From Octopus sinensis (Eukaryota): a stretch of DNA of 64,000 bases. The translations under genes were made by a program, and so were the position numbers. Location: contig NC_043021.1 in the NCBI RefSeq assembly GCF_006345805.1, forward strand, positions 22,258,001 through 22,322,000, in the 5' to 3' direction. Position 1 is the first letter of the stretch. Each line of letters opens with the position of its first letter. The notes beneath the pieces were generated by a model that saw nothing but the letters and a program-made list of their open reading frames with translations, made no database searches and had not been told where the DNA came from. Below, piece by piece: positions 62,510 through 64,000 of the stretch.

Positions 62510-62612
62510 TATACTGTATCGGAGGAAGAAATCGTTCCTTGTTTAGACCTAAACAAATTTCATGATTCAGAAAAATCAAACGTTTCATGCACACAAACTG
62601 CTTACTTTCTAC
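62510..62612 (+). pseudogene. Paralogous copy of part of the 63579 ORF (duplicated exon or pseudo-exon)
   Basis: TVSEEEIVPCLDLNKFHDSEKSNVSCTQTAYF aligns to AVSEEEIIPCLDLNKYHETVKPCISESCTQTASF; frame bounded by TGA 62465 and TGA 62645. Confidence 0.6.
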
Positions 62613-63578
62613 GTTTCTATATTTTCCTATTTCTCTCCCTCCGATGACTGGAATTATTTACGGAATAACATGTGATACATATTCCTTGTTACTCTAGAAA
62701 CAGCTGTAGGAGGCTTTACATATTTATTATAACTACTCAGGACTATGCTTATATTATAATTTAAATGTTATAGAATGATACCAAAACAATTGCTCGTTCT
62801 TTATCAGTTTTAATGTCTGTATATATGTGTATGTGTGTGCGTTTGTATATATGTAGCATATATACACATCTAAAAATGTTTTAAATATATTAATGAATGT
62901 GTATTGTGTGTACAGAATGAAATATATATATACATATATATATATATATATATATATATATATATATATATATAATGAGTGAGTGGTAACTATGTGTATG
63001 TTCATTTACACGCGTATTCGTATACACTACATGTATCTATATATGTTAGTGTGTGCATATAATTTCTGTCATCAATGAACGCATCAACGTGCATGCATTT
63101 GTGTATGTGTGTATGTATACATGTATACATGTATATGTATGTATGTATGTAATATATATATATGTGTGTGTGTGTGTGTGTGTGTGTTTGTGTGTGTGTG
63201 TGTTTGTGTGTGTGTGTGTTTGTGTGTGTGTGTGTGTGTGTGTTTGTGTGTGTGTGTGTGTCTATGCGTGTGTGTATAACGTTCATATATCTATGTTACC
63301 GTGTTAGAATCACATAAAATACGTCACAATATACACGAGGATAAAAAAAATTATTAAGTGTTGAATATTACCGCGGATTTTAACTTATTCAACTTTCGAA
63401 TTGACGCTTTAAAGCGAATTCTTTTTGACATTCTATAACTCATTGATTTCGTATTTCGAAATATTCATTTATTGTTTTATTATGAATTAGTTACTTTATC
63501 TTAATTTCGAATTTTTCAATTTACACTTAGAATTAGTGTGTGTATGGGAATCTGTATTTTTTGGCTGTTTCGTATAAA

Positions 63579-64000
63579 ATGCCCTCAGGTCGTACATCGA
63601 AGAGTTTCAAGAAACAACTGTTCAACTTTTCCTCTAAGTTTAAGTTGTGTTTCCTTGATTATTTCTTATGTTGCTGTATTTCGAAAAATGCTGTCTCGGA
63701 GGAAGAAATCATTCCTTGTTTAGACCTAAACAAATATCACGAGACAGTAAAACCATGCATTTCAGAATCTTGCACACAAACTGCTTCCTTCCAACCGATG
63801 ATCCCAGTTAGTGAACCAATTTTTGCTGGTGAACAAGACAATGAAATGGCCTCTGATGTAAGTACAGAAATAGTTTCCTTCCAACAAACATCGTGTATCT
63901 CTCAACCAAATATTCCCCAAGAGTCCAATATAAAAGTCATTTCTGATGGCGATTCGTATCATACAGCACGTGAGTATTGTGTTTCAAAGCCTGATCACGA
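63579..64000 (+). CDS. Putative protein-coding exon of an unknown gene, open to the window end
   Basis: ATG 63579 (A at -3), 140 sense codons with no stop in AT-rich non-microsatellite DNA: MPSGRTSKSFKKQLFNFSSKFKLCFLDYFLCCCISKNAVSEEEIIPCLDLNKYHETVKPCISESCTQTASFQPMIPVSEPIFAGEQDNEMASDVSTEIVSFQQTSCISQPNIPQESNIKVISDGDSYHTAREYCVSKPDH; upstream in-frame TAG at 63534. Confidence 0.6.
   Translation, partial: MPSGRTSKSFKKQLFNFSSKFKLCFLDYFLCCCISKNAVSEEEIIPCLDLNKYHETVKPCISESCTQTASFQPMIPVSEPIFAGEQDNEMASDVSTEIVSFQQTSCISQPNIPQESNIKVISDGDSYHTAREYCVSKPDH

Follow-up and report, generated by a model that had tools for sequence, protein, structure and literature searches.

GAP-43 and PSD-95 are N-terminally palmitoylated peripheral membrane proteins in which a cysteine cluster lies beside a basic patch. 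Here, we report an open reading frame (ORF) that begins at ATG 63579, on the forward strand, of a 64,000-nucleotide (nt) stretch of Octopus sinensis DNA (contig NC_043021.1, positions 22,258,001 to 22,322,000; the whole stretch is called the window below), and whose predicted product has a comparable layout. We consider it probable that this is a genuine Octopus-restricted gene with one uninterrupted 179-codon coding exon, accompanied by a non-coding relic, left by a partial duplication that took in the middle of that exon. The likeness to GAP-43 and PSD-95 is one of layout only, i.e., a basic stretch, a cysteine run in a short hydrophobic segment and a disordered acidic region. Unlike in those proteins, the cysteine cluster sits at residues 31-33 and not at the extreme N terminus, and no homology to any Pfam or PDB entry was detected; the comparison, drawn from the order of these regions, would thus be a functional analogy and not family membership.

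The open frame, its relatives and its predicted product

Translation of the window end gives 140 codons without a stop from ATG 63579 up to 63998, as an earlier note on this DNA had read it, and the nearest in-frame stop on the 5′ side is 14 codons away from the ATG. The frame is absent from the program-made ORF list because that list omits frames running off the source, which was the explanation offered at the time. Its length and openness are not exceptional by themselves; the window holds four other non-repetitive stretches that stay free of stops for at least 140 codons, so that the status of the 63579 frame as a gene rests on cross-species evidence and not on length. The window is about 97% identical to chromosome OX597838.1 in the published Octopus vulgaris reference assembly GCA_951406725.2 (PMC10700109), which marks its source as a very close relative of O. 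vulgaris. A 22-kb piece of that chromosome (L006) was reached via the protein CAI9740538.1, and positions 62159-64000 of the window align with 8388-10203 of it. Followed there past position 64000, the frame closes at 179 codons plus TAA (L006 9782-10321), and the stop corresponds to window positions 64116-64118, just past the end. Within the ORF the window and O. vulgaris differ at three of 422 nt (0.7%). Intact ORFs of 179-180 codons are also present in a third octopus species, on five Logan contigs (L001-L005) from five runs (SRR11869384, SRR11869385, SRR11869390, SRR11869391 and SRR11869394), and the flanks are colinear and orthologous in both of the other species. Substitution divergence between the window and O. 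vulgaris ranges from 1.5% to 8.7% across syntenic blocks. Single-nucleotide polymorphisms within the third species number 3 in 540 nt of the ORF, 4 in 337 nt upstream and 16 in 419 nt downstream, mostly from contig L004.

The comparison of O. vulgaris with the third species carries the case for coding. Over the 179 codons nucleotide identity is 81.6% and there is no indel in 537 nt, and the ratio of non-synonymous to synonymous substitution rates (dN/dS, pairwise Nei-Gojobori) is 0.39 in the frame of the ORF, whereas the remaining forward frames give 1.26 and 1.15; over the 140 codons inside the window it is 0.53. By segment, it is 0.42 for codons 94-130 and 0.21 for codons 131-179, beyond both of the donor-like sites discussed below. 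Differences fall 31/25/43 on the three codon positions. When the 99 observed substitutions were placed at random, the frame stayed open in 0.5% of the trials and amino-acid change was as low as observed in 0.55%; all three reverse frames contain 7-10 stops. The 420 nt on the 3′ side of the stop are 69% identical between the two species and carry indels of 3, 1, 10, 16 and 10 nt; flank indels against the third species include lengths of 1, 4, 10 and 16 nt, whereas the ORF has none, and the only indel polymorphism of the ORF inside the third species is 3 nt long and in frame. Between the window and O. vulgaris, 5 of 710 sites differ over the ORF plus the 288 nt upstream of it, against a regional baseline of 4.7% (Fisher p = 6e-9). 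The dN/dS against an orthologue and the intact frame, free of frame-breaking changes in three octopus species including that of the window, thus bear out the coding claim of the earlier note for the main ORF, and it is these orthologues, not the duplicate upstream, that supply the evidence of constraint. Taken together, the frame-specific signals indicate what is probably a protein-coding gene under moderate purifying selection.

The block directly upstream (63291-63578) differs from O. vulgaris at only 2 of 288 nt, against the same regional baseline, and is 83% identical to the third species (3′ flank, 69%). We infer from this conservation that it may be a promoter or a 5′ untranslated region (UTR). 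A conserved, pyrimidine-rich, acceptor-like motif ending in AG lies at about 63517-63535, and an upstream non-coding exon is possible. The features of the locus are collected in Table 1.

Table 1. Features at the 3′ end of the window (window coordinates).
Feature	Position	Strand	Basis
Partial duplicate of ORF codons ~36-72, putative non-coding relic	62508..62612	+	81% identity, dN/dS 1.12
Microsatellite-rich spacer (TA, TG and TGTA runs) separating relic and gene	62801..63290	.	Sequence; gap-rich O. vulgaris alignment
Conserved non-coding block, putative promoter and/or 5′ UTR	63291..63578	+	Low divergence from O. vulgaris and the third species
ORF, first 140 codons (+2 nt) of 179	63579..64000	+	Translation; O. 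vulgaris and third-species orthologues
GTAAGT after codon 93, phase 0; Val-Ser when read through	63858..63863	+	O. bimaculoides model splice point
GTGAGT inside codon 131, phase 1	63970..63975	+	O. vulgaris model splice point

Searched with the 140-amino acid (aa) peptide of the window, the matches were the ORF on the SRR11869391 contig (66% identity over the full length, against its 179 aa) and the Octopus bimaculoides protein A0A0L8H8A8 (77% identical across residues 1-93). When 1.84 billion representative proteins were searched exhaustively with a profile, five hits came back, adding CAI9740538.1 (69 aa), A0A0L8GB72 (227 aa, E 1.7e-6) and one spurious bacterial repeat protein, and related clusters number four in 5.8 billion proteins; the bacterial protein aside, neither profile search found a relative outside Octopus. 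A0A0L8H8A8, a probable orthologue of 152 aa that was compared as a protein model, has the same start, the same basic N terminus, the CCC, and the VSEEEIIPCLDLNK and SESC.QT motifs; it differs in leaving the ORF at GTAAGT and drawing its other 59 residues from an exon that lies some 6 kb further on. CAI9740538.1 (also A0AA36BTW3) comes from the same locus, and its residues 1-57 are identical to the translation of window codons 74-130; of the 179-codon ORF that is present in the same DNA, it lacks the first 73 codons, which are conserved, and the last 49, conserved as well. A0A0L8GB72 is a distant paralogue, about 33% identical over 106 residues, in which LCCC.S, VS..EIIP, SEP, ISFQ and S(F/Y).TA follow in the same order; its N terminus is different, its acidic C terminus is longer and it has no KKF.CES end, and no counterpart of it lies within 10 kb of the locus in O. 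vulgaris. Invariant in the family alignment are the CCC (paralogue included), S35, VS and EIIP. Pfam, with E values up to 10, gave no family for the window peptide, the full ORF or the relatives P0001 and P0007 and nothing significant for the two alternative exons described below; A0A0L8H8A8 gave a sub-threshold AimR match only (E 0.11), and the family profile found no PDB sequence at E up to 1. The earlier description of a host gene, possibly lineage-specific and assignable to no family, agrees with these searches. With this gene, an uncharacterised family confined to Octopus gains a new, under-annotated member, which is a fairly ordinary finding: one more taxonomically restricted, fast-evolving gene among the many reported in cephalopods, and no long-standing question is opened or settled by it. 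Its main value is for annotation: public protein sets represent the conserved 179-codon ORF only by two models, one of 69 aa in O. vulgaris that is both truncated and spliced, and one in O. bimaculoides with a different splice.

In the full-length O. vulgaris sequence, residues 1-22 are strongly basic (six K/R, no D/E), residues 23-34 are hydrophobic (grand average of hydropathy 2.2) with four cysteines, including the CCC at 31-33, and residues 35-179 are acidic (25 D/E against 11 K/R) and rich in Ser/Thr (32 of 145), the isoelectric point of the tail being about 4.4. The paralogue A0A0L8GB72 has no signal-peptide-like region. AlphaFold2, run on a four-sequence alignment, produced three short helices (the longest at 19-33) and coil past residue 53, with a mean confidence score (pLDDT) of 33.8, and at this low confidence the model is unusable for fold assignment. 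On the composition of these regions, the product could be a small peripheral-membrane protein tethered through palmitoylation of the CCC cluster beside the basic patch, and its disordered acidic tail would then offer a platform for interaction or phosphorylation. We put forward such a palmitoyl-anchored protein with a disordered acidic tail as a tentative proposal, somewhat more likely to be wrong than right.

The upstream copy

The recurrence of about 100 bp of the ORF further upstream, pointed out in the earlier note, is real: 63685-63790 recurs at 62508-62607, 1177 nt upstream, with 81% identity over 106 nt (E 7e-24). A 40-nt core of the duplicate occurs exactly twice in the window and in none of 100 shuffles. 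The sequence on either side of the upstream copy occurs only once in the window, and there is no third copy in the window or in the 12 kb further downstream in O. vulgaris. The copy may reach in the 5′ direction to 62471, equivalent to codon 19, with a 15-nt gap, and this extension is weak. The differences that had been listed are all there, i.e., the synonymous GTC/GTA, CAC/CAT and TTC/TTT, the conservative I/V, Y/F, E/D and T/S and the 6-nt gap GAATCT; seven further, non-conservative replacements (A/T, V/E, P/S, C/N, I/V, S/Y and Q/L) had been left out. The conclusion drawn from that list, that the two copies reveal codon-level constraint, does not survive the full count. Over 33 aligned codons the 15 differing sites fall 6/5/4 on the codon positions, and three codon changes are synonymous and 11 non-synonymous, with dN/dS at 1.12. 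Random substitution equals the conservative, stop-free pattern of the copy 34% of the time (P = 0.34, a test of low power with its 15 differences), and the copy would be expected to stay free of stops by chance in 45%. Polarised with the third species, seven changes fall on the branch of the copy (two synonymous, five non-synonymous) and six on that of the gene. A comparison of two copies over 100 nt cannot prove coding constraint; a comparison of orthologues can.

The copy is present in O. vulgaris too, where 3 of 142 sites differ from the window, all of them at codon positions 1-2. This divergence (2.1%) equals that of the left flank (2.2%) and is three times that of the ORF. The duplication took place before O. 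vulgaris and the window species diverged. The copy retains residues of other species that the window's own gene has lost (SEKSNV; FL), and the duplication must therefore be older than several lineage-specific replacements. As to its edges, the copy contains no ATG and no consensus donor was found at the 3′ edge (TAC|GTTTCT); AG dinucleotides lie just 5′ of it (ttag, tttag). Inspection of the edges by eye found no marks of a retrocopy: the 3′ edge, CTTTCTACGTTTCTATATTTTCC, has no A-run, and there is no poly(A) and no target-site duplication or flanking direct repeat. No other piece of the gene was detected beside the copy by blastn (word 7-9) or tblastn. The earlier alternative of a duplicated exon or a decaying paralogue is thus upheld in its second half, as a decaying copy, and fails in its first; the copy corresponds to codons ~36-72, the interior of one unsplit coding exon, has no convincing donor and is for that reason not a duplicated exon in the usual sense. 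We propose that these 100 nt would be the leftover of a small partial duplication of the exon middle that has since evolved without coding constraint. To judge from its substitution pattern, the upstream copy is apparently a decaying relic that drifts at the background rate, and not an exon.

Donor-like sites and alternative readings

The two donor-like hexamers that the earlier note had suspected of ending the exon sooner, GTAAGT at 63858 and GTGAGT at 63970, are located where it placed them, and both are exon ends in public models (A0A0L8H8A8 and CAI9740538.1, respectively). The O. bimaculoides model takes codons 1-93 and continues in an exon about 6.1 kb downstream, and it therefore uses GTAAGT. 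The O. vulgaris counterpart of that exon lies at L006 16195-16344, with 78% aa identity over 50 residues and a tttcag acceptor, and the implied intron in O. vulgaris is 6134 nt long. GAT|GTAAGT is kept in all three species represented by DNA. The O. vulgaris model splices at GTGAGT, with an intron of 1863 nt and a terminal exon of 12 codons (L006 12036) behind a canonical acceptor; it begins at the internal Met74, which suggests that it is a partial model. GTGAGT is not kept in the third species, which reads AATGAGT there. Transcript data (RNA-seq and Iso-Seq), protein alignments and ab initio prediction all fed the O. vulgaris annotation pipeline (PMC10700109), and this particular model may stem from any of them. 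The two hexamers may serve as alternative donors inside the exon, or else their use is an artefact of automated gene models. The C terminus of the O. bimaculoides model was also considered as the exon of the ORF read in a frame shifted by +1 (shuffles, 7/2000 and 124/2000), and this is ruled out by the separate exon 6.1 kb downstream with its 78% identity. The exon-like region around the latter in O. vulgaris (L006 16195-16420) stays open for at least 75 codons; it lies directly 3′ of a long trinucleotide microsatellite (15632-16150), and an A-run within it shifts the frame between species.

If the true products are spliced forms, 63857/63858 or 63969/63970 is the end of the coding exon, which joins an exon downstream, and the remainder is intron or UTR. 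The conserved and open downstream exon with its tttcag acceptor, the canonical acceptor of the O. vulgaris terminal exon, the GAT|GTAAGT shared by every species with DNA, and the RNA-seq and Iso-Seq data among the inputs of the O. vulgaris pipeline (PMC10700109) all speak for this. On the other hand, the strongest purifying selection is found past the sites, where no indel occurs and the stop keeps its position; the third species has no GTGAGT; and the O. vulgaris model, with its start at Met74, looks partial. The paralogue A0A0L8GB72 is colinear with the ORF through GTAAGT (tblastn, residues 25-128) and up to the position of GTGAGT (residue 130), and across and past GTGAGT the placement of the read-through tail comes from a MAFFT alignment only. 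Please note that the two readings are compatible, in that spliced forms could be minor isoforms. We regard the exclusively spliced reading as unlikely, though as one to be taken seriously. The frame under selection would be the read-through, and from the constraint being best beyond the sites, the conserved stop position, the colinear paralogue and the non-conserved GTGAGT we conclude that the 179-aa read-through product is probably the selected one, the spliced forms being minor isoforms or modelling artefacts. A bolder combination, which we think rather improbable, is that the one locus gives three proteins with a common N-terminal membrane anchor and different C termini (the 179-aa read-through, residues 1-93 plus the downstream exon, and residues 1-130 plus 12 aa), in an Octopus-specific, CCC-anchored, disordered family with two functional internal donors; if it were true, current annotations would capture only the minor forms.

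The non-coding alternative is that there is no protein at all, that 63291 to about 64118 is conserved non-coding DNA such as an enhancer or the exon of a long non-coding RNA, and that the frame is open by chance. In both species comparisons the upstream 288 nt equal the ORF in conservation, the skew over codon positions (31/25/43) is mild, no Pfam family, solved relative or confident fold is at hand, and the window contains four other non-repetitive frames open for 140 codons or more. Against this stand the frame specificity of dN/dS (0.39 against 1.15-1.26), the simulated chance of an open frame (0.005), the complete lack of indels in 537 nt compared with five in 420 nt of the 3′ flank, the single in-frame 3-nt polymorphism and a 33%-identical paralogue with the same order of motifs, and we judge a purely non-coding origin of the signal to be improbable. 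It is still less probable, indeed very much so, that 62508-62612 is a functional coding piece, i.e., an alternative exon or the one exon left of a tandem paralogue. It lies in a frame that stays free of stops for 59 codons, its gaps against the ORF are multiples of three (6 nt, possibly 15 nt), AG lies upstream of it and it persists in O. vulgaris, but a dN/dS of 1.12, a pattern matched at random (P = 0.34) and free of stops by chance in 45%, an excess of non-synonymous changes on its own branch (five against two), differences from O. vulgaris at codon positions 1-2 only and at the pace of the flank, the missing ATG and consensus donor, and its identity with the interior of an unsplit exon with no other part of the gene detected beside it all argue the other way. 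The window is rich in dispersed repeats and microsatellites, and this is what would favour an origin of the ORF in a transposable element or high-copy repeat, a match the earlier note had named as fatal to its claim. Relatives in the profile searches, however, are few (four clusters among 5.8 billion proteins; five hits among 1.84 billion representatives, the spurious one included). The window and its extension, 76 kb together, contain a single full copy and a single partial one, the other two species have orthologous flanks in the same order, and Pfam gave no transposase or reverse-transcriptase domain, all of which leaves this origin close to negligible.

Several observations weigh against the gene as we read it, a single 179-codon exon with a membrane-tethered product. 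Two independent annotations picked spliced models over the 179-codon ORF, and for O. vulgaris we saw no public model that covers the whole ORF. The ORF is no more conserved at the nucleotide level than the upstream 288 nt (81% vs 83% with the third species), so that part of the conservation could be non-coding. A dN/dS of 0.4-0.5 is weak constraint, and for codons 73-93 the ratio is near 1. The hydrophobic stretch, which includes an Asp, comprises 12 residues only and could not span a membrane as a helix, and the AlphaFold2 model is of low confidence (pLDDT 33.8).

Other sequence in the window

The final 2 kb of the window are AT-rich eukaryotic DNA that contains long microsatellites (TA, TG and TGTA), and an Rfam scan of the whole window (1-64000) gave no family at the gathering score. 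The four other non-repetitive stop-free stretches, 148-197 codons long, lie at 42701-43294 and 60033-60536 on the forward strand and at about 45659-46135 and about 49847-50290 on the reverse strand. For three of the four, Pfam gave nothing above threshold, the top match being a sub-threshold HTH_Tnp_4 (E 0.07), and the four are probably transposon relics. A dispersed repeat of about 140-240 nt, present in both orientations with 80-96% identity (61000-61160, 2215-2373, 38517-38657, 39645-39784, 19906-20049, 13501-13738 and 1954-2191), looks like a short interspersed nuclear element. A second dispersed repeat, about 180-230 nt long and 85-95% identical, occurs at 771-988, 29944-30172, 30320-30548, 55592-55815, 24175-24374, 18972-19159 and 12949-13116, and two of its copies form a near-palindromic pair at 29944-30548 with 147 nt between them.

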